Shown here: positions 4,982-45,673 of the stretch, one piece after another
Numbering within the stretch: the stretch's first letter is position 1
Layout of the letters: every line of letters starts with the position of its first letter
DNA from: Saccharolobus islandicus REY15A
Lineage (GTDB): Archaea; Thermoproteota; Thermoprotei_A; Sulfolobales; Sulfolobaceae
Assembly (NCBI RefSeq): GCF_000189555.1
Contig: NC_017276.1
DNA length: 64,000 bases
Strand: one strand, 5' to 3'
The notes under the pieces: generated by a model
What the model was told of the DNA's origin: nothing
Database searches by the model: none
What the model saw: only the letters and a program-made list of their open reading frames with translations
Made by a program: the position numbers and the translations under genes

Positions 4982-7246
4982 GTGAACTCTATAAGGAGTC
5001 TTCTAAATCAGATGAACTTGGAGGAAAAAATAGCTCAACTTCAAGCTATACCAATAGACGCTCTTATAGAGGAAAAGGAATTCTCTGAGGAAAAAGCAAA
5101 AAAATATCTAAAATTAGGAATAGGGCAGATCACTAGAGTGGCTGGTAGCAGATTAGGACTAAAACCGAAAGAAGTCGCAAAACTAGTTAATAAAATTCAA
5201 AAATTTCTAGTAGAAAATACCAGGATGAAGATTCCAGCAATAATACACGAAGAATGTCTATCTGGTTTAATGGGATACTCTTCTACAGCATTTCCTCAAG
5301 CGATTGGGTTGGCTAGTACTTGGAATCTTGAATTAGTTATGGATATAGCATCAGTCATAAGATCTCAAGCAAGACTAGTTGGAGTTAACCAATGTCTTTC
5401 TCCCGTGTTAGACGTTTGTAAAGACCCAAGATGGGGAAGATGCGAAGAGACTTATGGGGAAGACCCATACTTAGTAGCTTCAATGGGATTAGCATATATT
5501 ACCGGGTTACAAGGTGATAATCAATTGGTAGCGACTGCAAAGCATTTCGCAGCTCATGGTTTCCCAGAAGGTGGAAGAAATATTGCACAAGTGCATGTTG
5601 GAAATAGAGAATTGAGGGAAACGTTCCTCTTTCCCTTTGAGGTTGCCGTAAAGATAGGAAAAGTAATGTCGATTATGCCTGCATATCATGAGATTGATGG
5701 AATACCATGCCATGGCAATCCCCAATTATTAACTAATATTTTAAGACAAGAATGGGGATTTGATGGAATAGTAGTATCTGATTACGATGGTATTAGACAA
5801 TTAGAGACAATACACAGGGTTGCATCAAATAAGATGGAGGCCGCTATTTTGGCTCTGGAATCTGGCGTGGATATAGAGTTTCCTACTATAGATTGCTATA
5901 GTGAACCATTAGTTAATGCTCTAACGGAGGGTTTGGTCCCAGAGTCTCTAATAGATAGGGCCGTCGAGAGAGTTTTACGAATTAAAGATAGACTTGGACT
6001 TTTGGACAATCCATTTGTTAATGAAAATTCGGTTCCAGAAAAGTTAGATGATCACAAATCGAGAGAATTAGCGTTAAAGACAGCTAGAGAGTCAATAGTT
6101 CTCCTTAAAAATGAAAATAACATACTACCTCTAAGCAAGAATGTTAATAAAATTGCAGTAATAGGACCAAATGCTAATGATCCAAGAAATATGTTAGGAG
6201 ATTATACTTATACTGGACATCTAAATATAGATAGCGGGATAGAGATCGTAACAGTACTTCAAGGAGTAGTTAAGAAGGTTGGGGAAAGTAAAGTGCTTTA
6301 CGCAAAGGGGTGCGATATTGCAAGCGAATCAAAAGAAGGATTTGCCGAGGCAATAGAGATAGCAAGGCAAGCCGACGTAATAATAGCAGTCATGGGTGAG
6401 AAATCAGGATTGCCGCTATCATGGACGGATATTCCTTCAGAAGAAGAGTTTAAGAAATATCAAGCAGTTACTGGAGAAGGTAATGATAGGAGTAGTCTAA
6501 GATTACCTGGAGTTCAAGAGGAATTACTCAAAGAACTATACAAGACTGGAAAACCAATAATCTTAGTTTTAATTAATGGTAGACCCTTAGTTCTTTCACC
6601 AATAATTAATTACGTTAAAGCAGTAATTGAAGCATGGTTTCCAGGAGAAGAAGGAGGAAATGCCATAGCTGATGTAATATTTGGAGACTACAATCCAAGT
6701 GGACGCTTACCTATAACGTTCCCAATGGATACTGGGCAAATACCATTATATTATAATAGGAAACCATCTTCCTTTAGACCATACGTTATGCTCCGTTCAT
6801 CTCCATTATTTACATTTGGATATGGATTAAGTTACACTCAATTTGAATATTCTAACCTTGAAGTAACGCCAAAAGAGATAGGACCTAACAGTAATATTGC
6901 CATTTCAATAGATGTTAAAAATGTGGGGAAAATGGAAGGTGATGATGTAGTTCAACTATATGTTTCAAAAACCTTTTCTAGTGTTGCTAGACCAGTTAAG
7001 GAATTAAAAGGATTTGCTAAGATTCATCTTAAACCCGGTGAAAAGAGAAGAGTGAAATTCATATTACCCACGGAGGCATTAGCGTTTTATGACAGCTTTA
7101 TGCGACTAGTAGTAGAGAAAGGTGAATATCAGTTATTAATAGGAAATTCTTCTGAAAACATAATTCTTAGGGATATATTTAGAATAAAAGAAACAAAACC
7201 TATTGTAGAAAGAAGAATATTTCTATCGAATGTACAAATTGAATAA
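4982..7246 (+). CDS. xarS: GH3 beta-xylosidase/alpha-L-arabinosidase
   Basis: GH3 motifs HEECLSG, DPRWGRCEETYGEDP, KHFAAHG, VVSDY nucleophile, ESIVLLKN, C-terminal FnIII-like domain; GTG start. Confidence 0.92.
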   Translation: MNSIRSLLNQMNLEEKIAQLQAIPIDALIEEKEFSEEKAKKYLKLGIGQITRVAGSRLGLKPKEVAKLVNKIQKFLVENTRMKIPAIIHEECLSGLMGYSSTAFPQAIGLASTWNLELVMDIASVIRSQARLVGVNQCLSPVLDVCKDPRWGRCEETYGEDPYLVASMGLAYITGLQGDNQLVATAKHFAAHGFPEGGRNIAQVHVGNRELRETFLFPFEVAVKIGKVMSIMPAYHEIDGIPCHGNPQLLTNILRQEWGFDGIVVSDYDGIRQLETIHRVASNKMEAAILALESGVDIEFPTIDCYSEPLVNALTEGLVPESLIDRAVERVLRIKDRLGLLDNPFVNENSVPEKLDDHKSRELALKTARESIVLLKNENNILPLSKNVNKIAVIGPNANDPRNMLGDYTYTGHLNIDSGIEIVTVLQGVVKKVGESKVLYAKGCDIASESKEGFAEAIEIARQADVIIAVMGEKSGLPLSWTDIPSEEEFKKYQAVTGEGNDRSSLRLPGVQEELLKELYKTGKPIILVLINGRPLVLSPIINYVKAVIEAWFPGEEGGNAIADVIFGDYNPSGRLPITFPMDTGQIPLYYNRKPSSFRPYVMLRSSPLFTFGYGLSYTQFEYSNLEVTPKEIGPNSNIAISIDVKNVGKMEGDDVVQLYVSKTFSSVARPVKELKGFAKIHLKPGEKRRVKFILPTEALAFYDSFMRLVVEKGEYQLLIGNSSENIILRDIFRIKETKPIVERRIFLSNVQIE

Positions 7247-10016: not shown

Positions 10017-10810
10017 CATAGTGTCGTCATTAAGCTACAAATTCTGGGATTAACCTTCTCTCCCATAAGACTAGGGCTAGGGAGTACATCATGGTGCGAA
10101 TGCTCCTATTTACTGCCTTAGTACCCTCTTGAACCTAACCAGCCTATCCCTCACTGAGGAATGAAGAGATTCATTGGGATTAACGGGTGAGATAGCCATG
10201 TGATCTTTCAACCAGAAGTACAAGTCGTAATCATCGTTCACCAATCTACCCTCATCCGGCAAGTACTTCTTAACCTCGCTGAAAGCCCTTTCGTCCCTAT
10301 CACCAACTGAATAGATTAAGTAAAAACCAAGGCTTGTGTAAACGTAGCAAGTAAAGATCCATTTGTAGAAAGCCTTAGCATCTCTGTACAAATAAGTCCA
10401 CATCTCATCAACAACCTTAGCAGTAACCTTACCCTTGACCAAATCCTTAGCTTTACTTCACAATTCCACAAGCTTCTCATGCTTTTGCCCACCATATCGC
10501 TTAATCCAAGTGAAAACAGTACCACGATGCACGTTAAGCACACTGGATATGGCCCTTATACTCATACCATTAGCATACAACCTCAAAGCCTCCTCCCTCA
10601 ACTTCTTGGAATGGTGATGATAAGTAGCGTCAGCAAGGAAATACTTACCGGAATCCTACACAAATACCTCTGCCTACCCAAAGGCTTACCACACTTAACC
10701 ACGTGGTGACTACCACAAGAAGTACATGCTAAGTCTTCCCTAATTACAGGCTTCCTACCCATAAGTAATACTCGTTATACAAATACAAATAGCTTAATGA
10801 TCACACTATG
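10017..10810 (-). mobile_element. IS1-family element (ISC796-like), transposase frameshifted
   Basis: 21-bp TIRs CATAGTGTCGTCATTAAGCTA / TAGCTTAATGATCACACTATG (2 mismatches); Zn-ribbon N-terminus (CTSCGSHHVVKCG), HTH, VVDEMWTY catalytic domain in broken frames; no TSD (flanks AGTGTGTC / GATAATAT). Confidence 0.88.
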
Positions 10811-10885
10811 GATAATATTGATGCAATAGATGTAAATCTGACATCAGATTGTATGAAGAGAATTAAAGAGATAATAACGTACTAT

Positions 10886-11502: not shown

Positions 11503-11627
11503 AATTTAAACTATATCTTTATTATTAAAAAGTTTACGATATGTATACTTACTATAAACTTAGGCTAACATAACTCCAAGACTCATCAAAACCCTAGACT
11601 TATTATCAAACTCCTTAAGTAACTCTT

Positions 11628-12855
11628 GAGAGTGTCCGGAATGTAAAAAACTGAATTTTAATTTTTGAGAATAAATTGATTCTTAGCATTATTTTGGATT
11701 AAATTGTAGTAATACTTAAGTTATGGGAGGAGAGAGTAGTACCATGGCACGTACACTAAGACGCATCCCAAACTTAGTGTACTATTCTCTCCCCCCAAGA
11801 GAGGATATGCCGTGGAGGGAAAAATGGTTAACGGATATCAAACCCGTGCTAGACACCCTAGATCTAGAAAGAGTTCTAGGAGAAGGCACTCTGATTTACC
11901 TGAAGTTACTAATCGTCATGGTACTCTACTCCTGTTCCTATAGAGACGCGGTAAAGATGGTCAACGTGAACGTCGTTGTGGCGTGGTTCGTTGGGAGGAA
12001 AGTGGGTAAGAGCACATTACACGATTTCGTGGGAAGAGTATACGAAGTGAGGAAGAAGTTGCTGGAAATTTCCTTCAAGCTTGAGGAGAAGTGCCTACCC
12101 AGTTACCTCCCTGCCAGTGCCCACTCCCTGGACTTCATTGCGTGGCTCGTTGACTCCTTCCTTCTAGACTTACCTTTTGGGAAGAGGAGCGTGGAGACCT
12201 TCCGAGAGAAGGCAGAGCTGGAGAAGAAGGAAGGTAACTTGAAGAAGGCCAAGAAGCTGCTCTCCTTGGGGAGAACTAAGAGGAGATTCAAGGGGAAGTG
12301 GACCAAGAAGAGGGGAGTCTCTCACTTCGGGCTGAAGGCCCTAATAGTTATCTCCACTTCCCTCTTCGTAAGGTCCATCACGGTGAAGCCTGCCAACTTC
12401 TCGGATAAGAGATTTAAGTCCCCGCTCAAGGGGATTAAGATAGCTGATAGGGGTTTCTCGCCCTCCCCAACCCAGCTCATAGCTATGGAGAAACCTTTCA
12501 CGACTCTGAGGGCCCACGTGGAGTTCTTCGGTACCTTCCTGTACAAGTTCTGGAGGCCCTATGGGACCACGGTGTGGAGGAACGAAGCCTTCCTCCACGT
12601 CCTGGGAGTCTTCTACAATATCAGGATGTTCCTAGCCGTCCAACGGAGAACCCCTCCAGGACGTCGAATAGTTCAACTCTAAGAAACGTCATCACGCACT
12701 CAAGCATCACCATGCATGACAAATAAATCTTCTTAACTTGATATTTTTCCATGATCAAGTTTTTCCAGATTAACCAGGTTTTATACTTCTGATAATATTA
12801 ATATTTATCATTCCATTTATATATTCATTCAGATAATTACATTCCGGACATTCTC
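11628..12855 (+). mobile_element. IS5-type element (ISC1234-like by size and TIR), 1228 bp
   Basis: 19-bp TIRs GAGAGTGTCCGGAATGTAA (11628-11646) and TTACATTCCGGACATTCTC (12837-12855), 1 mismatch; visibly GC-richer than the host; no TSD. Confidence 0.85.
11723..12682 (+). CDS. DDE transposase (intact)
   Basis: LVDSFLLD, ADRGF and VEFF DDE-type motifs; lies inside the TIRs. Confidence 0.88.
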   Translation: MGGESSTMARTLRRIPNLVYYSLPPREDMPWREKWLTDIKPVLDTLDLERVLGEGTLIYLKLLIVMVLYSCSYRDAVKMVNVNVVVAWFVGRKVGKSTLHDFVGRVYEVRKKLLEISFKLEEKCLPSYLPASAHSLDFIAWLVDSFLLDLPFGKRSVETFREKAELEKKEGNLKKAKKLLSLGRTKRRFKGKWTKKRGVSHFGLKALIVISTSLFVRSITVKPANFSDKRFKSPLKGIKIADRGFSPSPTQLIAMEKPFTTLRAHVEFFGTFLYKFWRPYGTTVWRNEAFLHVLGVFYNIRMFLAVQRRTPPGRRIVQL

Positions 12856-13370
12856 ACGAGTTTCCTTTTTCAGAGCTCCCGAGCCCTTTCACTGGTTTCC
12901 CATACCATGTCTTGGTTGTCCAGTCTATTGAGAGATCTATCTCATTCACTCCCTTTAATATCTCCAAGGATATTTTCCTAGCTCTTTCCAATAGCTTTTC
13001 AGTCACTTCCATCCCTTGTTTCTCTACGTAATTCCTCACGGTCTGTGGGGATACGTCATACGCTCTGGACTTGTTCTCTACTGAATCGTTCCACAAACAC
13101 GCGGAGATGAGAGTTTTCGCTACCTCCTCTACCTTTTCCCCTTGGAAGTTTAGCATGGAAAGTAATTTATATCCTATTTGTTGAATATTATTTTGGTGAG
13201 GGAGACCTGGTGTTACCATCTTCCTATGTCACGTGGTAATACGCCATCTCCCTCACCTTAAACCCTTTCTTCAATTGAATTCTTTATACTCTTATAAATT
13301 TCTTTATCTTTTATAAATTCGATATTATCCTACCAGAAATATTTTTTCTAATATGATTTTGGGTCTACCG
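12856..13370 (-). mobile_element. Truncated ISH3-family element (ISC1439/ISC1359-like), left end only
   Basis: ORF 12854..13219 (MVTPGLPHQNNIQQIGYKLLSML...SIDWTTKTWYGKP) is the N-terminus of a Sulfolobus ISH3 transposase; its TGA is created at the junction with the IS5-type TIR. Putative left end CGGTAGACCC at 13370. Confidence 0.75.
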
Positions 13371-32889: not shown

Positions 32890-34023
32890 TTAGAAAACCT
32901 CTTTTATTTTCAGATACAATAGTGACATTAACATTCTCATTATTCCTATTCCAATTAGCATGATATTTATGGCAACTGCTAAACTGAACCATTCTGAAAT
33001 AAGATTGAACATTAAACTTGAAATTGTTGAACCTAAAAGTGCGGCAATTCCGTTAAACATGTTGTATAGAGCTATATTAATCCTCTTTTCGTAATAGTCA
33101 GAGTGGTCAAATAGGAACGCAGTATAAGAGATTGAGGCGGAGTTCGTAAATCCAGAAACTAGATTAGCAATATATATCTCATAAGGTGTGGTGGAAAATG
33201 CATAAGCTAGTGGGAAAGTTGCTAAGGCAAATCTTCCAAAGAACATAACGAATTTTCTATGCCTATCAACTAATCTACCCACGAGCCTCTGTAATGCTAG
33301 GGTGGATGTTCCTCCTGTAACGTTAATTACAGCTACTTGAAATTCGTTCATATGGAACTTATACACTTGTGCCAATGGAAAAATCGGCCATGCCATTGAC
33401 CATACAAATGTAAAGATAAAGTTTGTCAAGATGAATTTTCTTACTTCAAGATTTGATGAAAACAGTTTTATACCATTACCTCTTGCAAACTCCGCATCAA
33501 CATCTGAATTATAGATTACGTAAGCGTTAAAAGCATATATTAAACCAGAAATGATAAAAAAGTACCGCATTAAGTCTAAATTATTACCTACGATAAATCC
33601 AGTTATTAATGTAGCTATTAAACCACCTATTGAGGCGTAAAAGTTATAATATGCTAGTGTTCTTCCTCTATGGGTTGTACTTATTTTATCCAAAATCAGT
33701 AACCAACCGAAGTTCGCAGCACCCAGACAAGCACTTATAATCGAGTAAACCAATACGAAATACTCATTGTATATTGCGTAAACTCCTATTAATATCCACA
33801 GTAAACCCCCAAATAAACTTCCAATTGCAATTAACTTTTTGGCTTTTATGTACAAATTTGCTAATACATATTGGATTATTCCAGGGAATGCAGTATTGGC
33901 AGAGGATACTATTGCCAATAAAGCACCCGTTATTCCATACGATGCAGTAAAGAACGATACGAAGGGATTTACGAGACTAATAGCCAAATTGTTAAGAAGT
34001 GAATAGAGTCTCAATGGCTTCAA
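32890..34023 (-). CDS. MFS permease, paralogue of the lacS-linked permease
   Basis: Same length (377 aa) and shared [16 protein letters not shown] and LVNPF.SF motifs. Confidence 0.87.
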   Translation of the reverse strand: MKPLRLYSLLNNLAISLVNPFVSFFTASYGITGALLAIVSSANTAFPGIIQYVLANLYIKAKKLIAIGSLFGGLLWILIGVYAIYNEYFVLVYSIISACLGAANFGWLLILDKISTTHRGRTLAYYNFYASIGGLIATLITGFIVGNNLDLMRYFFIISGLIYAFNAYVIYNSDVDAEFARGNGIKLFSSNLEVRKFILTNFIFTFVWSMAWPIFPLAQVYKFHMNEFQVAVINVTGGTSTLALQRLVGRLVDRHRKFVMFFGRFALATFPLAYAFSTTPYEIYIANLVSGFTNSASISYTAFLFDHSDYYEKRINIALYNMFNGIAALLGSTISSLMFNLISEWFSLAVAINIMLIGIGIMRMLMSLLYLKIKEVF

Positions 34024-34101
34024 TAGAGGTCATAATGGAGATTAATAGTTTAATCTTTTAAAGTTATTCCCTTTAAAATTTTTTGAAAAAACATATAATG
34101 A

Positions 34102-36273
34102 TTAGCTATTTAAAAGTTTTAAAATTAATTCCGGTTTAGTTGGCATTATATAGATGTTTTTACCTATGGCGTCTTCTACGGCATGTAGAATTGTTGGAGT
34201 TGCAGCAATGGCTGGCAGCTCTCCAATCCCCTTAGACCCTAATGGGGTGTCTGATTTAGCCAGTGCTAGAGACTTCCACTCCACTTTAACAGCTTCCATA
34301 GCAGTGGGAATAACGTAATCGGAGAAGTTGGAAGTTATTAATGAGCCCTCTGTCGAGTAAACAGTTTCCTCATATAGTGCTTGGGAAATACCTTGAAGAG
34401 CACCTCCATGAACTTGTCCCTCAGCTAAAAGCGGATTTACAACAACTCCCACATCGTCAAATGCCTTGTACTCTAACACTTTCACAAATCCAGTCTCCCT
34501 ATCTACCTCTACTAGTGCTATGTGTATTCCATATGGTGAGGTATAAGGTCTAATTGTGTAAGAGTATTCCTCCTCTGGATACACTCCCATACGCAGTGCT
34601 TCTCTAGCGGTATCAGCTAAACTCATTTCACCCTTTTTATGGTAGAACTTTCCATTCCTATACTCTATTTCCTCTGGCCTTACACCTAACTTTTCACCTA
34701 CAACTCTAAGCAACTTCTCTTTTAATCTTATTGAGGCTTCATACACTGCCGAACCTCCAACTGTTAAAGTTGTACTGCCACCCGTTAAACTACCATGGGA
34801 TATCAAGTCTGTATCTCCCCATAATACATCAATTTGGCTTACATCAACATCAAATACCTCAGCTGCTATTTGTGCAAATGCAGTGGCATCTCCTTGCCCA
34901 TGTGGAGTAAATCCACTCACGACTTGAATCCTACCATTGGGTGTAAGTTGTACTCTAGCAGTGCCAGTCCCGAAGGACGCTATCTCTGATACAATAGCTA
35001 CTCCCACTCCAGCTAACTTACCCTTAGCCCTTAACTCGTCACGTTTCCTTAATAGCTCATGATAAAACGGTTTAGCGATTTTTAATGTCTCCCTGTATTT
35101 TCCACTGTCATAGTACATTCCAGTCGGAGTATTATAGTGACTTACCTCATCAATTATATTAACTTCCCTAATTTCAAATTGATCAACACCTAAAGCCCTA
35201 GCTCCAAGGTTCAAAATCCTCTCTACGAAGTATGTAGCCTCAGGTCTACCAGCACCCCTATATGGACCTATAAACGTCTTATTAGTAGCAACACCTAGTA
35301 CCTTAACCTTTAGGGCATTAACCTTGTATCTACCTACCAATAATCTAGCTGCCGTAGTGGCCATTCCAAAGGAATCTTCATAAATCTCCCTTATTGGAGC
35401 ACCTAAATCCATGATCAGAGTTCCTTCTATTCCTAACAATTTTCCCTCCTTATCAAAGGCAGCCTTAAACTTTAACCTCATGTCCCTTCCATGATTTGTC
35501 GACATAAACTCTTCAGTCCTAGTATTAAACCACTTTATAGGCTTCCCAGTAAGAACTGCCAAATAGGATATTAGAGCTTCTTCGGGATAAATATAGATTT
35601 TACTACCAAATGCTCCTCCAACAAATGGCTGAACTACCCTAACGTCATTTACTCCATATTTTGATAAGAGTTGTATAAGAGTATCCTTTAATCCAAATAC
35701 ATTCTGTGTACTGCTCCATACCGTTAGCCTTCTTCCATCAAAGTAGGCTACAGCACCTCTAGGTTCCATTGCTGATGGAATCACTCTTTGGTTTATGACC
35801 TCAGCTTCAACTACCTTATAAGCGTTTTTAAATGCAGAATCTACATCTCCTATCTCTACATTATCCTCTAAAACAATATTTGAGCTCAAGTCGCTTTTAG
35901 CTTTATTAACGTTTTTCAACGCTTCCTCAACGTCAATAACTGCAGGTAATGGTTCGTATTCCACTTCTACTTGTTCAGCCAAATCCCTAGCCTTGTATTC
36001 ATCTTCAGCTAAAACAACTGCTAATGGTTGCCCTTGATAAAGTGCCTCTTCTTTAGCTAATCCGATGAGATCTGGTAAATCTTTAGCAGTGTAGCATAAT
36101 GCATCTTCTGGGCATCTTATACTCTTTATCTTTGCATGCGCGTACTGGCTTCTTATAAATACTGCGTAAAGTGTACCCTTAAAGTCAATGTCGTACACAA
36201 ATCTGCCTTTCCCTGTAATTAAAGAGGGATCTTCTATTATCCTCTTAACGGGCCTTCCTATTTCTCTTGGCAT
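34102..36273 (-). CDS. Xanthine-dehydrogenase-family molybdopterin large subunit (CutA/CoxL-like aldehyde oxidoreductase)
   Basis: VGGAFGSK, YRGAGRPE, HGQG, QVHGG..QG, KGIGE; lacks the form I CO dehydrogenase AYXCSFR loop. Confidence 0.9.
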   Translation of the reverse strand: MPREIGRPVKRIIEDPSLITGKGRFVYDIDFKGTLYAVFIRSQYAHAKIKSIRCPEDALCYTAKDLPDLIGLAKEEALYQGQPLAVVLAEDEYKARDLAEQVEVEYEPLPAVIDVEEALKNVNKAKSDLSSNIVLEDNVEIGDVDSAFKNAYKVVEAEVINQRVIPSAMEPRGAVAYFDGRRLTVWSSTQNVFGLKDTLIQLLSKYGVNDVRVVQPFVGGAFGSKIYIYPEEALISYLAVLTGKPIKWFNTRTEEFMSTNHGRDMRLKFKAAFDKEGKLLGIEGTLIMDLGAPIREIYEDSFGMATTAARLLVGRYKVNALKVKVLGVATNKTFIGPYRGAGRPEATYFVERILNLGARALGVDQFEIREVNIIDEVSHYNTPTGMYYDSGKYRETLKIAKPFYHELLRKRDELRAKGKLAGVGVAIVSEIASFGTGTARVQLTPNGRIQVVSGFTPHGQGDATAFAQIAAEVFDVDVSQIDVLWGDTDLISHGSLTGGSTTLTVGGSAVYEASIRLKEKLLRVVGEKLGVRPEEIEYRNGKFYHKKGEMSLADTAREALRMGVYPEEEYSYTIRPYTSPYGIHIALVEVDRETGFVKVLEYKAFDDVGVVVNPLLAEGQVHGGALQGISQALYEETVYSTEGSLITSNFSDYVIPTAMEAVKVEWKSLALAKSDTPLGSKGIGELPAIAATPTILHAVEDAIGKNIYIMPTKPELILKLLNS

Positions 36274-36407
36274 GGTCTAAGATATGTTATTTGTTAATAA
36301 AAACTTTATTACGACGGTCTTTTCGTAATACATCTCTTGGTAAACTTAACAAGTAAAGGATAACTATATTAACCTATTCAAAAGAGTTTAAACCTTATCT
36401 CTTGAAA

Positions 36408-36480
36408 GGGAGGCCAGGGCAACTCCCCATTAAATCCCCATAACCCCCTTTTATTACCCCATTTGCCCTGGCCCTATCCC
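36408..36480 (-). ncRNA. Candidate structured ncRNA: 11-bp stem enclosing a four-G-tract quadruplex motif
   Basis: GGCCAGGGCAA (36412-36422) pairs perfectly with TTGCCCTGGCC (36463-36473); the minus-strand loop is G4-N8-G5-N4-G4-N7-G4; TATA-like TTTTTAAG at 36512-36505 on the minus strand. Confidence 0.45.
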
Positions 36481-36606
36481 ATGGCTATATATTGAAAATC
36501 TATGCTTAAAAACTTTACTTTCATCATACTAAGTAAAAAGTACATATTCTATAATTATAGTATAGAAACTCTAAACTTATCAGTTATACTATTAAATGTA
36601 TTATTT

Positions 36607-37836
36607 TTAAACGGTGGAATATAATCCTCTAGCTACCTTGGGTATGAAGTCCTCTACTTGCTGTGGATCGAAACTAATCTTCCTCCCATTCTCAGCTGAA
36701 AGGTAGGCGTGCATCATAAGTTGGACTATTAATAATCCGTCATACCAATTTTCTAATGGCATTTTACGGGATAGGAAAGACTCAACCATATGCCTATCCT
36801 CTCCTTGATACCCGTAAGTTACCGCCTCATCCGGTATAATTGGCATTAATCCTTGGTCTGCATTTTGCTTTTCGACAAAAGTTTCAGATGGTGGAAGTTT
36901 AATGTTTCTACTGAAGAACGTTGATAGTTCCGATTGTAGAGTATTAATGTTAACACTGTATTCCGGCCCTAACACCTCAACCGATAATCTAAGCCCAGCT
37001 CCAACGAAGTTCCACGAAGTCCTGGTCTCAGCCATTATTAAATTCCCTATATCGTCCTCATAAGTTATAACAGTTAATGCGTAATCCTCAGCTGGTTCCT
37101 TCACGAAGTCCACGTTATACCTTTCTTTTAAATGCCTAGCATACTCTTCCTTATTCCACTTTAACGTTTCTATCTCAGCGTACACGTGTTTCGGCTTAAG
37201 TGAGGATTTATCCTTTGAAGGGTCAGTTAGTAAAAATCTAGTTGCCTCCAAACTGTGACAAGTCATATCTATTAATGCCCCTCCACCAGAAATAGTTGGT
37301 TTCCAAAACCAGCTATTATGAGGGCCAGAGTGCTCTTCAGCTGCTCTTGCCAAGTATGGTGTTCCGGAATTCCTCGCCCCCATCTCCCAGATAGCCTCCT
37401 TAGCCCTTACCACAGAAGGCATGAAGATCTGATTCTCCAAGTATCCGTGCAGTAGACCAGCCTTCTCCACCAATCTGATCATCTCCTTAGCTTCCTTCAC
37501 ATTTCTAGCTAAGGGTTTTTCTACGGCTATTCCGTATACGTTAGATCTCCCTTGCGAGACCTCTTCGCTAATCAATTTCGTGTATTCTAAATGTGCATCA
37601 TTGGGGACAGTTAGCCATACTGCATTAATCTCCTTATCTGATAGCATTTTACTAATATCGTCATACACTTTAGGTTTCCCTAATCCCACTTGTTCAGATA
37701 ATCCAGCAAATTCTTTAGAAGAGTTTAGATTTCTAGAATAAACTCCCTTAACTTCTACATTCCTAACTCCCACTAATCCCCTTAGATGAAACCTAGCTGA
37801 AAACCCACTTCCTAAAAACGCGATACCTAAAGCCAT
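36607..37836 (-). CDS. Gfo/Idh/MocA oxidoreductase (long form)
   Basis: GSGFSA, VPNDAH, VEKP, GGGALIDMTCH. ATG at 37836 preferred over TTG at 37854. Confidence 0.88.
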   Translation of the reverse strand: MALGIAFLGSGFSARFHLRGLVGVRNVEVKGVYSRNLNSSKEFAGLSEQVGLGKPKVYDDISKMLSDKEINAVWLTVPNDAHLEYTKLISEEVSQGRSNVYGIAVEKPLARNVKEAKEMIRLVEKAGLLHGYLENQIFMPSVVRAKEAIWEMGARNSGTPYLARAAEEHSGPHNSWFWKPTISGGGALIDMTCHSLEATRFLLTDPSKDKSSLKPKHVYAEIETLKWNKEEYARHLKERYNVDFVKEPAEDYALTVITYEDDIGNLIMAETRTSWNFVGAGLRLSVEVLGPEYSVNINTLQSELSTFFSRNIKLPPSETFVEKQNADQGLMPIIPDEAVTYGYQGEDRHMVESFLSRKMPLENWYDGLLIVQLMMHAYLSAENGRKISFDPQQVEDFIPKVARGLYSTV

Positions 37837-37873
37837 AAAATAAGTTTGTAACAATAATTAAAAAATATATAGG

Positions 37874-39658
37874 TTAAACTCTCATTAGACAGCCCGACTT
37901 AGCTCTAACTACTCCTTGGCATGAGTCCATATCCTCTTTAATTTTCACGTTAAGTTCATATTCCTTATCCTCCCATGTGTGGTTTAAAACCGCTATCAAG
38001 CTCTCTCCTTTTCCTTCAAGGTACTGTATTTCAACACCAAAGTCTTGTTTTGGAAAGCTCTGTTCTATATTGGCTACTCTCCCAATATAATTATAAAGTG
38101 ATAAGTGGCGTTTATCCATTATCTCGTTGTTTGAGGATATTAACTCTAGAGGTATTGTGGAGAGGATAGCGTTGCCCTTTCCTCTTTTAGCAATGAAAAT
38201 TACACCATTGTTGCTATCATCTACTCCTATTACTTTAGCATCTTTTTCTTTAAATGAATAGGTGTATAAATTAGATTGTCCCAACTCGTATATATTATTA
38301 TCTAATCTTATTCTTTCTGGGACCTTAACTCCCTTACTCCCTGCGTAATTGCTGGGGATTACTCCAAAAAGTTCCTCCCATAAGTGTGTTGCAGACAGAT
38401 GCGTTAGAGTATAGGTTGAGAAGTAGATAGTACTACCATTTTCAACTACCTTTAATAATTTCCTCCACGTCGTTGTAAGTAGTCTAGTAACGGAGGGTAT
38501 TATTAATAATTTATAACTTGATAAATTTTCATCCTCCTCTCTTGCAAATGTAACTTGAATGTTGGATAGTCTAGCGAACGTAAACGCTTGATTCAATACC
38601 CTAGCGAAATCCCATCTTTTGTTTTGCTCGTAAACGAATTGGAAGTTCCTATAAAACCACGAGGGTACTAGTATTGCTGAATCCCTTTTAGGCACTTTAT
38701 AAGATGATAGCTCAATATCCTTTATTTTGCTACTGAAATCCTTTACCACTTTGGCAGCAATCTTCTCACTTCCATCTTGTCTTATCACTCCAAAGGTTAA
38801 TTCGTGAGGTTCCCATAGATATGGTTCATCACCCTCCCTCGGGAAGTCGGAAAAACACCATATCAATGCACCATCAGCACCGTAAACTAACGCTCCCCTC
38901 AGTATTAATCCTATAAACTTAGCGTGACTTTCCTCAGAGTACAATGAAGTAGGAAATCCAAACTCCTCTAGAATTACCGGCAATCTGGAACTTTGATCGT
39001 ATTCCAAGGTCATGAAGTATTGAAATGAATGTCTAACTGGATCTTGATCGTACAAATAAATATGTGGAGAGGCATAATCGACAATTCCCTTAACGTTTTC
39101 TGGTCTTAAGAAATTGTGGGAAAATGGAGAAACGTTATCTCCAACCGAGACTACGTGTTGGTCATCAATTCCCTTAATGTAACTATACAATTCCTTAAGC
39201 CATCTCAAGAACACATCGTCATTTTGTGGTACTCTCACTAATGATATCTCGTTTGTTAGTATCCATCCCATTATTGCCTTACTTTGCTTAAAACTATTCA
39301 CAACATCTCCTATAAACCTCTTCGTTTGTTCAATCTTGTCGTAAATTGTATTATCAATATCCCATGGGATACCCCAGTTCTTTCCACTCATATGACCTAC
39401 AATTAAGGTTAATAGAACTTTTATGGAATGCCTTTCCGCCTCTTCAAGAAATCTCCCAATTTTACCTTTACATTCATGTTTCAGATTACCTAGTTGATCT
39501 GCGCAATCCTCATCCAATACGAATGCCCTAATAGTGTTTATCCCTAGTTCACTCATTAATTCGAAATCTTTTTTAATTTCTTCAATTTCAAAGCTACTCC
39601 ACATCTTTATATTTGATATCCTAGGCCAATAGTTGAAGCCTAAGATGAACTTTTTCAT
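37874..39658 (-). CDS. GH5 beta-mannosidase/mannanase-like glycoside hydrolase
   Basis: GFNYWPR, LTNE acid/base, ILEEFG nucleophile, WCFSDF, HELTFG; C-terminal GH42-like trimerisation domain. Confidence 0.87.
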   Translation of the reverse strand: MKKFILGFNYWPRISNIKMWSSFEIEEIKKDFELMSELGINTIRAFVLDEDCADQLGNLKHECKGKIGRFLEEAERHSIKVLLTLIVGHMSGKNWGIPWDIDNTIYDKIEQTKRFIGDVVNSFKQSKAIMGWILTNEISLVRVPQNDDVFLRWLKELYSYIKGIDDQHVVSVGDNVSPFSHNFLRPENVKGIVDYASPHIYLYDQDPVRHSFQYFMTLEYDQSSRLPVILEEFGFPTSLYSEESHAKFIGLILRGALVYGADGALIWCFSDFPREGDEPYLWEPHELTFGVIRQDGSEKIAAKVVKDFSSKIKDIELSSYKVPKRDSAILVPSWFYRNFQFVYEQNKRWDFARVLNQAFTFARLSNIQVTFAREEDENLSSYKLLIIPSVTRLLTTTWRKLLKVVENGSTIYFSTYTLTHLSATHLWEELFGVIPSNYAGSKGVKVPERIRLDNNIYELGQSNLYTYSFKEKDAKVIGVDDSNNGVIFIAKRGKGNAILSTIPLELISSNNEIMDKRHLSLYNYIGRVANIEQSFPKQDFGVEIQYLEGKGESLIAVLNHTWEDKEYELNVKIKEDMDSCQGVVRAKSGCLMRV

Positions 39659-43514: not shown

Positions 43515-43745
43515 ACTATGTTTACCATACAATGAGGCTAAATACCTTAGAGCTAAATAAATCCTCTTGACCGTTAAAAATACTTCATACGTGATAGGTT
43601 CTCTAATCCTCTCTATTTCTAATGAATGCAATTCCGAATTAATAAGAAGGTCCTTATCTATCTGGGAAAAAGGTAATGATTTTGAGGTGTACTGTCTTAG
43701 AAATTTACGTAGGTTTAAAAATTTTTAAGTTATATTGAGTGTGTC

Positions 43746-44546
43746 GATAGTGTCGTCGTTAAGCTATTTATATTTGTATAACGAGTATTACTTATGGGTA
43801 GGAAGGCTTTAGTTAGGCAAGACGTTTCTTGCCCCTCTTGTGGTTCTCATCATGTTGTTAAGTGTGGTAGGCCTTTGGGTAGGTAGAGGTATTTGTGTAG
43901 GGATTGCGGTAGATACTTCTTGGGTGATGCTACTTACCATCATCATTCCAAGAAGTTGAGGGAGGAGGCTTTGAGGTTGTATGCTAATGGTATGAGTATG
44001 AGAGCCATTTCTAGGGTTTTGAATGTCCCCTTGGGTACTGTGTTCACTTGGATTAAGCGGTATGGTGGGCAGAAGTACGAGAAGCTTGTGGGGTAAGGCT
44101 AAGGAGCTGGTCAAGGGTGGTGTTGTTGCTAAGGTTGTTGATGAGATGTGGACTTACTTGTACAAGAATACTAGGGCTTTTTACAAGTGGGCGTTCTATA
44201 TAGGTTTTCACTTGCTACGTTTACACGAAGCTGGGAGTTTACCTCATTTACTCTGTGGGGGATAGGGATGAAAGTACTTTCCTTGAGGTCAAAAAGTATT
44301 TGCTTGACGAGGGTAGATGGGTGAGCGATGATTATAACTTGTACTTCTGGTTGAAAGACCTCACGGTTGTCTCGCCAGTTAACCCGAACGAGTCCTTTCA
44401 TTCCTCATTAAGGGATAGGCTAATTAGATTCAAGAGAGCAACGAAGGCAGTAAATAGGAGCATTCGCACCATGATGTACTCCATAGCCCTAGTCTTATGG
44501 GAGAGAAGGTTAATCCCAGAATTTGTAGCTTAATGACGACACTATG
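43746..44546 (+). mobile_element. IS1-family element (ISC796-like), inactivated, inserted in an IS6 TIR
   Basis: TIRs GATAGTGTCGTCGTTAAGCTA / TAGCTTAATGACGACACTATG; 8-bp TSD AGTGTGTC (43738-43745, 44547-44554); nonsense TAG in the Zn ribbon, a frameshift and a 13-nt insertion. Confidence 0.9.
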
Positions 44547-45312
44547 AGTGTGTCCAACAATTTTTGTTTTTTGTATAAAACATTTGTAGGGCGGTGAGGT
44601 TGTATTATTGAGGAACCATGATTAGCAAAACCAAATTAAGGCACCTCACCGCCCTAATGTTAAGTTCTGTTTTTTCAGCTTTAAACCTTTCTCCACGTTT
44701 TCACACTATTGATGAGGTTGCTAAAGCATTATCAGCCTACTACTTGGGTCTTTCTTTGAGGAGGGTTGAAGCCTTGTTTCACGTCCCTAGAAATACTGTC
44801 CAGTATTATTGGAGGAAGTTAGCTAATTACTCTTCTCCCCCCCCCCCCGTGTAGCAGTTGACGAGACTAGGATTAGAGTAGTGAATGGTTTGCTTTACTG
44901 GTTGTGGGTTGTGAGGAATTTGTAGCTTAATGACGACACTATGAGTGTGTCCAACAATTTTTGTTTTTTGTATAAAACATTTGTAGGGCGGTGAGGTTGT
45001 ATTATTGAGGAACCATGATTAGCAAGACCAAATTAAGGCACCCCACCGCCCTAATGTTAAGTTCTGTTTTTTCAGCTTTAAACCTTTCTCCACGTTTTCA
45101 CACTATTGATGAGGTTGCTAAAGCATTATCAGCCTACTACTTGGGTCTTTCTTTGAGGAGGGTTGAAGCCTTGTTTCACGTCCCTAGAAATACTGTCCAG
45201 TATTATTGGAGGAAGTTAGCTAATTACTCTTCTCCCCCCCCCCCCCCCCGTGTAGCAGTTGACGAGACTAGGATTAGAGTAGTGAATGGTTTACTTTACT
45301 GGTTGTGGGTTG
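44519..45312 (+). repeat. 397-bp tandem duplication (IS1 right end plus IS6 left part)
   Basis: 44519-44915 is repeated from 44916; the ORF starts at 44618 and 45015 differ by 397; the copies differ by a few SNPs and C-tract length (12 vs 16). Confidence 0.9.
44618..44915 (+). pseudogene. Partial IS6-family transposase copy
   Basis: Same N-terminus as 45015..45656; the C12 tract shifts the frame to a TAG; truncated at the duplication junction. Confidence 0.85.
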
Positions 45313-45673
45313 TGAGGGATTTGAACACGGGAAAAGTGGTTGCAGTTAGGCTTTCAGAAACTAGGAGCGGGTTAGATGTTATACTCTTACTGGAGGGTGG
45401 TGGAATAAGGGTGGAAGAGGTTAGGGAGATACTTCACGACGGCGGACCTTGGTATAATATACTTTCAACACTCGGCGTTAACCATGAACACGAGACTTTT
45501 GGCAAGAGAAACCTAGTTGAACAAGTGTTCAGGAGTTTAAAGTTAAGGCTTGCAAGTATGGACAAACACTTCCCACACAATGCCAGTAAGGTTACAATAC
45601 TGAGGTGGGTTAAGGCGTTCTTCACCTTATACAACCTCTTACAACAAGGTGAATGAAATTGTTGGACACACTC
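44943..45673 (+). mobile_element. IS6-family element (ISC774-like), complete copy
   Basis: Perfect 18-bp TIR GAGTGTGTCCAACAATTT; the whole composite 43737-45673 is flanked by the 8-bp TSD GTTATATT (43729-43736, 45674-45681). Confidence 0.88.
45015..45656 (+). CDS. IS6-family DDE transposase
   Basis: VAVDET, LHDGG, NLVEQ DDE motifs; HTH N-terminus. Confidence 0.87.
   Translation: MISKTKLRHPTALMLSSVFSALNLSPRFHTIDEVAKALSAYYLGLSLRRVEALFHVPRNTVQYYWRKLANYSSPPPPPRVAVDETRIRVVNGLLYWLWVVRDLNTGKVVAVRLSETRSGLDVILLLEGGGIRVEEVREILHDGGPWYNILSTLGVNHEHETFGKRNLVEQVFRSLKLRLASMDKHFPHNASKVTILRWVKAFFTLYNLLQQGE

Follow-up and report, generated by a model that had tools for sequence, protein, structure and literature searches.

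A conserved hairpin enclosing four G-tracts in a Sulfolobales sugar-utilisation cluster is very probably an undescribed small structured RNA gene

Short RNAs in which stems hold a functional G-quadruplex (G4) core are known from the fluorogenic aptamers Spinach, Mango and Corn, and the element described here would share this layout with them. The aptamers, however, are artificial, in vitro selected and dye-binding, with two to three quadruplex layers and short irregular loops, whereas our element is natural and conserved, carries four tracts of four to five G joined by long A/U loops, and has no known ligand. In prokaryotes, the E. coli G-quadruplex-hairpin-duplex switch (Kaplan et al. 2016, PMC5100583) is likewise conserved, intergenic and capable of forming a hairpin or a G4. 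The G-tracts of that motif lie inside the hairpin, hairpin and G4 compete, and the motif occurs in multiple copies, whereas the element is single-copy and has a predicted promoter of its own. Its stem is formed by sequence other than the G-tracts, so that, unlike in the E. coli motif, both structures can be present together. An archaeal intergenic potential G4 motif beside complementary C-rich sequence on its 3' side has been described in the repeats of Methanomicrobiaceae (Chashchina et al. 2021, PMC8044849), whose G4 and C-track sequences take alternative folds in vitro. Those repeats, which were studied as DNA, are dispersed and multi-copy, and pairing takes place between their C-track and the G-runs; the element, in contrast, occupies a single orthologous locus in Sulfolobales and has a separate stem in which the covariation is seen.

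Several copies of a very short motif set in variable sequence, as seen in the element, are also a feature of the small RNAs CsrB/RsmZ and RsaE/RoxS. These RNAs are bacterial, whereas the element has a fixed set of four GGGG and matches no Rfam model, and we know of no CsrA-like partner in Sulfolobales. The C/D-box and H/ACA guide sRNAs of archaea, which are abundant in Sulfolobales, are likewise small (50–80 nt) and promoter-driven or processed, but the element has neither C/D boxes nor an ACA box or pseudouridylation pocket. Judging from the comparative analysis presented below, the element is very probably an undescribed small structured RNA gene, and as an archaeal sRNA gene it would have an architecture that we could not find described for any natural RNA.

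Architecture and conservation of the hairpin

The window, that is the whole 64-kb stretch of DNA that was analysed, has a G+C content of 36 %, and the hairpin lies within a 333-nt gap separating two of its minus-strand genes. From 36480 to 36408 the minus strand reads GGGA-TAG-GGCCAGGGCAA-AT-GGGG-TAATAAAA-GGGGG-TTAT-GGGG-ATTTAAT-GGGG-AG-TTGCCCTGGCC-TCCC, which is exactly the sequence and architecture put forward in an earlier sequence-only reading of the window. The features of the element and its surroundings are collected in Table 1. Neither 11-nt arm has a second copy elsewhere in the 64-kb window. Directly 3' of the hairpin the window carries TTT (36405–36407); in the other lineages T3–T5 runs follow 10–30 nt past the hairpin, at positions that are not conserved.

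Table 1. Coordinates of the element, its predicted transcription signals and the flanking genes in the window
Feature	Position	Strand	Remarks
Whole hairpin element, predicted RNA core	36408..36480	minus	73 nt; covariance model R1 84 bits, E=4e-21
Outer stem, 5' strand GGGA	36477..36480	minus	Partner 36408–36411; 4 bp in window
5'-side bulge TAG	36474..36476	minus	3 nt; TCG in L052, AG in remaining lineages
Inner stem, 5' strand GGCCAGGGCAA	36463..36473	minus	11 bp, perfect complement of TTGCCCTGGCC
Four G-tracts with A/T linkers	36425..36460	minus	Predicted four-layer G-quadruplex
Individual G-tracts	GGGG 36457–36460, GGGGG 36444–36448, GGGG 36436–36439, GGGG 36425–36428	minus	Read from sequence
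Inner stem, 3' strand TTGCCCTGGCC	36412..36422	minus	Sequence and covariation
Outer stem, 3' strand TCCC	36408..36411	minus	Pairs with GGGA 36477–36480
First T4 run 3' of hairpin	36380..36383	minus	Candidate RNA 3' end
BRE/TATA-like promoter AAAGTTTTTAAG	36505..36516	minus	Predicted transcription start about 36480–36482
Dyad TTTACTT-N10-AAGTAAA	36514..36537	minus	Overlaps BRE; T5 run 36535–36539
Perfect palindrome CTATAATTATAG	36549..36560	minus	Only exact copy in window
Separate BRE/TATA AAAGTTTTTATT of molybdoenzyme gene	36296..36307	minus	Bounds the element, outside it
GFO/IDH/MocA oxidoreductase gene	36607–37854	minus	Stop codon 127 nt before hairpin
Molybdopterin-binding subunit gene, xanthine-dehydrogenase-family enzyme	34102–36273	minus	ATG at 36273, 134 nt 3' of hairpin

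Runs of at least four G occur about 100 times per strand of the window. Four such runs joined by loops of up to 12 nt were found at this one site only when both strands of the 64-kb window were searched, and 300 first-order as well as 300 third-order Markov simulations of the window produced no such four-run site. With four runs of 4–5 G and loops of 8, 4 and 7 nt, the element has the sequence of an intramolecular G-quadruplex as defined by four runs of at least three G with loops of about 1–12 nt on one strand. Its G4Hunter score of 2.08 is exceeded in the window only by two C-homopolymer tracts. The folding energy of the 91-nt region was unremarkable in comparison with shuffled sequences (z-score −0.36), so that the significance of the element rests on motif statistics and comparative data, not on thermodynamics.

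Other repeats were seen elsewhere in the window. Two tandem copies of a unit measuring about 400 nt occupy 44519–45323 (300 nt at 99 % and 86 nt at 98 % identity), and each of them carries a C12–C16 homopolymer tract; these tracts account for the highest G4Hunter and i-motif scores of the window. Two inverted copies of about 800 nt (10017–10812 and 43744–44546), lying 33 kb apart with 78–98 % identity and holding no ORF above about 110 aa, could represent decayed IS copies or else a mobile element of the non-autonomous type. At 11621–12862, inverted repeats of 36 nt (86 % complementary) surround a 319-aa ORF (11723–12682), a layout that suggests an insertion sequence.

Orthologous loci were fetched via both flanking proteins, and one metagenome pattern scan was added. 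Six lineages carry the element 3' of the GFO/IDH/MocA oxidoreductase gene, in the same orientation: the S. islandicus-like lineage of the window, S. solfataricus (CP050869.1), S. tengchongensis, Sulfolobus sp. A20/E1, the uncultured L023/L087 and the uncultured L029. As the window lineage includes a variant with the bulge TCG (L052), the comparative set comprised eight distinct sequence variants. The GFO protein of the window is 98 % identical to that of Sulfolobus islandicus Y.G.57.14, and the flanking proteins of the other lineages are only 77–89 % identical to those of the window. Where synteny is missing, the element is missing too, namely at the S. acidocaldarius molybdoenzyme locus (L028), in the lineage with a molybdoenzyme of 65 % identity (L030/31) and at the locus of a GFO homologue of 71 % identity (L110–113). 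A covariance model run over 257 kb of Sulfolobales DNA returned orthologous copies only, and the element is confined to one clade among the loci examined.

Wider pattern searches led to the same lineages. A metagenome scan that included the upstream dyad and the BRE gave 54 matches, five of which were real, all from lineages already sampled. The exact-arm pattern had no match in viral contigs and 19 matches in 185,579 species genomes, which we attribute to chance because all of them fall in unrelated organisms, either G+C-rich bacteria or one methanogen; this genome scan missed S. solfataricus because its arms bear a compensatory change. In viral contigs, a stem-agnostic loop pattern yielded 18 chance or low-complexity matches and the upstream 21-mer none. 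A viral contig of 36 % G+C (L035, IMGVR_UViG_3300033146_000921) carries at 97–136 the sequence CCCCTATAAGGGGGTATTATTAGGGGGTAAAAAGGGGATTGTTAAGGGGGG, which consists of CCCC followed by four G-tracts with A/T linkers; though similar in design, it is not a homologue, since it reaches only 10–11 bits with the covariance model.

The stem shows clear covariation. In a MAFFT alignment of the eight variants with imperfect register, 92 % of the cells were paired and six pairs displayed double changes; none of 500 shuffles reached the observed pairing values, and registers slid by 1–3 columns dropped to 33–55 %. Setting the correct register, with a 3-nt bulge in the window group and a 2-nt bulge in the remaining lineages, gave 121 Watson-Crick pairs, four G.U, no A.C and four other combinations among 129 cells, and all four of the latter fall at the pair next but one to the loop. 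Compensatory G-C/A-T exchanges occur in the inner stem at position 1 (S. tengchongensis), position 7 (the A20/L023 clade) and position 8 (S. solfataricus), as well as at positions 1, 2 and 3 of the outer stem, which measures 4–6 bp in the other lineages. The bulge of 2–3 nt keeps its terminal G in all eight variants. RNAalifold recovered the same helix independently, and ViennaRNA predicts the stem as the minimum-energy fold of every variant at both 37 °C and 75 °C, with about −10 kcal/mol at the higher temperature. The locus hence carries what comparatively defines a structured non-coding RNA, a helix kept by compensatory substitutions in orthologues. The presence of G.U pairs and absence of A.C combinations indicate the G-rich strand as the folded one. 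Covariation of the stem and conservation of the G-tracts across Sulfolobales, proposed by the sequence-only reading as the test of its idea, are thereby both seen, in eight variants from six lineages.

Every lineage has exactly four tracts of at least four G. All 16 core G columns are invariant, compared with 3 of 26 linker columns (Fisher p=6e-9). The linkers measure 7–11, 4–6 and 7–9 nt across lineages (4–11 nt overall) and drift in sequence as well; they consist of 86–100 % A+T and are almost without C, which leaves the G-runs without a Watson-Crick partner within the loop. The loop spans about 40 nt, and its outermost G-tracts lie 1–3 nt from the stem. This conservation pattern points to a fold, or to a protein recognising G-runs. 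As the linkers vary, a fixed seed would consist of GGGG alone, and four nucleotides are too few for antisense targeting.

The predictions on the quadruplex itself are mixed. With its G4 option, ViennaRNA returns stem plus G4 as the minimum-energy fold of all variants at 37 °C (−48 to −50 kcal/mol), and at 75 °C its G4 energy model predicts no G4. The quadruplex loops add up to 18–23 nt, a length that weakens a quadruplex. When the element of the window was folded with its flanks at 37 °C, the G-tracts preferred an alternative pairing with the C-rich 3' arm, which was not reproduced for the element alone or in the other lineages. RNA quadruplexes are usually parallel with their two ends on opposite faces, and closure by a duplex through junctions of 1–3 nt may therefore need an unusual topology. 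Taking conservation and folding predictions together, we regard a G-quadruplex fold of the core as an evenly balanced prospect.

Transcription signals, neighbouring genes and known RNA classes

The last base of the BRE/TATA-like AAAGTTTTTAAG is separated from the first G of the hairpin by 24 nt in the window, as had been pointed out before, and the comparison adds that this distance is fixed: the box is kept in all lineages and the spacing stays at 24–25 nt while the sequence of the spacer diverges. The same class of 10-mer stands 23–26 nt before the start codons of several window genes and 26 nt before the first G of the hairpin. A box-to-start distance of 23–26 nt is the arrangement expected for leaderless Sulfolobus mRNAs, and we infer that AAAGTTTTTAAG serves as promoter of the element.

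Upstream of the box, about 60 nt comprising two dyads and the T5 run are almost invariant. This stretch is more conserved than an ordinary promoter and could belong to a longer RNA or to the 3' UTR of the upstream gene. TTTACTT-N10-AAGTAAA is unique in the window; its arms are conserved and its 10-nt spacer differs in S. tengchongensis. Together with the T5 run, it may be where a regulator binds and/or where transcription of the GFO gene terminates. Five lineages share the palindrome CTATAATTATAG, and in S. solfataricus (L106, about 5278–5289) both halves have changed symmetrically to give CTGTAATTACAG, which makes the palindrome a probable regulator binding site by prediction; since both half-sites are altered in S. 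solfataricus, a co-evolving dimeric regulator or a paired structure is suggested. A search for the two upstream dyads as a regulon signal revealed no further copies in the window.

The molybdoenzyme gene downstream has transcription signals of its own. The 10-mer AAAGTTTTTA ends 24 nt before its ATG, and an equivalent box is present at the same distance in all lineages. A conserved regulatory block within 36274–36407, containing AAGAG-N12-CTCTT and a dyad of the TTAAC-TT-GTTAA type (TTTACTTGTTAAG in the window), accompanies the molybdoenzyme gene in all lineages. The hairpin stays on the GFO side, and its distance from the molybdoenzyme gene is 134 nt in the window and S. solfataricus, and 197, 296 or about 1390 nt in other species, the largest of these values in S. 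tengchongensis. No gap separates hairpin and block in the window and S. solfataricus, 50–85 nt do so in A20 and L023, and about 1.2 kb in S. tengchongensis (CP146016.1, L022 1611–3000), where the insert encodes a 190-aa ORF without Pfam domain. With a conserved leaderless promoter in front of the gene itself and a separation this variable, the element is probably not a leader or riboswitch of the molybdoenzyme gene, and the 5' leader suggested from the sequence is disfavoured.

The element lies inside a conserved sugar-utilisation cluster (window 32890–39658 and L106), which encodes a GH5-like/DUF4434 hydrolase, the GFO/IDH/MocA oxidoreductase, the molybdoenzyme of the xanthine-dehydrogenase family, an MFS transporter and a second GFO oxidoreductase. 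A GH38 alpha-mannosidase-like gene adjoins the cluster in S. solfataricus.

Searches for known RNA classes agree with the initial impression that the sequence corresponds to no tRNA, C/D-box RNA or IS end. Rfam 15 gave no match at gathering thresholds in the whole window, and a permissive search of 36200–36700 produced only matches with E≥2.1 and 13–19 bits, compared with family thresholds of 40–64; ARAGORN detected no tRNA or tmRNA in the window. A C/D-box sRNA was rejected, as 36408–36480 contains no boxes and the ATGATGA at 36521–36527 lies upstream of the TATA box with no CUGA downstream; ATGATGA was also discarded as a C box in its own right, reading ATACCGA in S. tengchongensis and ATGACGA in L029. 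An H/ACA sRNA was rejected on account of a stem that is continuous apart from one 2–3 nt bulge, with no tandem G.A pairs and no pseudouridylation pocket, and in the window, S. solfataricus, S. tengchongensis and L023 no ACA follows it. Nor does the hairpin qualify as intrinsic terminator: the terminator scan found none, the loop measures 40 nt, and the T-run is 3 nt long in the window and absent or displaced in the other lineages. A 40-aa plus-strand ORF (36502–36624) was dismissed since its ATG is absent in L023 and A20. The terminal repeat of a MITE or IS was likewise rejected, as one copy alone is present in the window and in 257 kb of related loci, with no direct repeat flanking it; blastn against plasmid and phage collections returned no match. 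In the literature search, we came across no report on the element sequence, the presumed S. solfataricus gene numbers or this RNA. PMC3325985 does not list the element among its hairpin candidates for S. solfataricus, and the archaeal G4 literature consulted (PMC7565180, PMC8044849, PMC12873603) gives no description of it.

Proposed mode of action and competing explanations

The reading we favour is that of an independently transcribed small RNA of about 75–110 nt whose stem clamps a four-layer G-quadruplex, and we assign it a probability of roughly 0.5. That the element is a transcribed structured RNA, whatever its loop may form, appears likely from the comparative data, and among the three functions first considered for it (sRNA, 5' leader or DNA-level G4/i-motif element) a stand-alone sRNA is favoured. 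TBP and TFB would bind the BRE/TATA at 36516–36505 and set a minus-strand start within about 3 nt of the first G, at 36480–36482, so that the predicted 5' end falls 0–3 nt before GGGAUAGGGCC on the G-rich strand. The transcript would amount to approximately one hairpin, made up of an outer stem of 4–6 bp, a 5' bulge of 2–3 nt and a G+C-rich inner stem of 9–11 bp, with the base pairing demonstrated by covariation. Going by the conservation pattern, the nearly C-free loop of about 40 nt would most likely form an intramolecular four-layer G4 placed 1–3 nt above the stem. The folded RNA may thus represent a heat- and nuclease-resistant module, for which recognition by a protein or a cation appears more likely than action as an antisense seed; the latter is improbable, because the linkers are free to vary and the GGGG runs alone are fixed. 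The two conserved upstream dyads suggest that synthesis would be under control, probably one shared with the glycoside and sugar-oxidation genes nearby. More tentatively, and with less confidence than in the RNA itself, the element could represent the first class of natural non-coding RNAs to have a duplex-clamped four-layer RNA G4 as its defining feature, held under selection in hyperthermophilic archaea and working as a cation- or temperature-dependent switch or as the site where a dedicated G4-binding protein docks to regulate sugar catabolism.

The same small RNA could act without a quadruplex, its stem displaying four single-stranded GGGG motifs to copies of an RNA-binding protein or to short C-rich sites, much as CsrB/RsmZ present GGA motifs. 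Fixation of the GGGG runs alone, amid variable, A/U-rich and nearly C-free linkers as expected of an unstructured loop, agrees with such a display, as does the lack of a predicted G4 at 75 °C. However, no lineage departs from exactly four tracts, whereas motif number varies among sponge RNAs of the CsrB/Rsm type, each tract keeps at least four G, the tracts approach the stem to within 1–3 nt, and no candidate protein is known, so we consider this account unlikely. A cis-acting role in a longer mRNA, be it as 3'-UTR stabiliser or terminator of the GFO gene or as molybdoenzyme 5' leader reached by read-through, would explain why the hairpin always follows the GFO gene, with 60 almost invariant nucleotides in between, and why it lies 134 nt from the molybdoenzyme ATG in the window and S. 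solfataricus. We nevertheless judge it quite improbable: a T5/T6 run and then a consensus BRE/TATA intervene between GFO stop and hairpin, the spacing from this box to the hairpin base is that from promoter to start, the molybdoenzyme gene is served by its own leaderless promoter and lies anywhere between 134 and about 1390 nt away, there is no conserved U-tract after the stem and the terminator scan was negative.

 Compensatory evolution that tolerates G.T would also fit a single-stranded DNA hairpin of the G-rich strand, and upon strand separation a G4-bearing hairpin or cruciform, or one with an i-motif on the C-strand, could form and affect replication, recombination or transcription of the neighbours; G4 DNA is heat-stable, and chair-type DNA quadruplexes put both ends on one face. 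Yet such an element leaves the conserved promoter at the right distance unexplained, cruciform extrusion is disfavoured in Sulfolobales, whose reverse gyrase supercoils DNA positively (cf. PMC6150213), and an i-motif is improbable at the near-neutral cytoplasmic pH and about 78 °C, which makes this explanation decidedly improbable. It is very unlikely that the plus strand is the RNA, forming a hairpin with four CCCC motifs that pair with G-rich ribosome-binding sites in the manner of the C-rich loops of RsaE/RoxS. Complementarity of the stem is the same on either strand and C-rich seed loops are a known sRNA design, but on the plus strand the four G.U cells turn into non-pairing A.C with no case of the reverse, and the plus-strand flank is unconserved, with different inserts per lineage, whereas the promoter side of the minus strand is nearly invariant. 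Terminal inverted repeats of 11–15 nt around a short core could finally mark an IS end, or a miniature inverted-repeat mobile element present as a remnant or as one isolated copy, and Redder et al. are said to have described in 2001 that Sulfolobus genomes carry MITEs of a size similar to the element. Its single-copy state in the window and 257 kb of related DNA, the missing direct repeats, the same orthologous site with compensatory stem evolution in six lineages, the lack of plasmid and phage matches by blastn and the purely chance nature of the exact-arm matches in 185,579 genomes leave this origin a next to negligible chance.

The favoured reading, a small RNA with a stem-clamped quadruplex, bears on a question that is open, which is whether RNA G4 structures have selected functions in prokaryotes. 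Evidence for such functions has come mostly from motif counting or antibody staining (for archaea, PMC7565180 and PMC12873603). At the element, selection is seen directly in the compensatory evolution of the stem, the frozen positions of the G-tracts and the drift of the loops. The element should be of high interest for RNA and G4 biology because its hosts are genetically manipulable; genetics, transcriptomics and in vitro transcription systems exist for S. solfataricus and S. islandicus. If the reading is true, it would provide a heat-stable G4 scaffold possibly useful in RNA engineering, add an unannotated RNA family to the genomes of Sulfolobales, and constitute direct evolutionary proof of functional RNA quadruplexes in a prokaryote growing near 80 °C.
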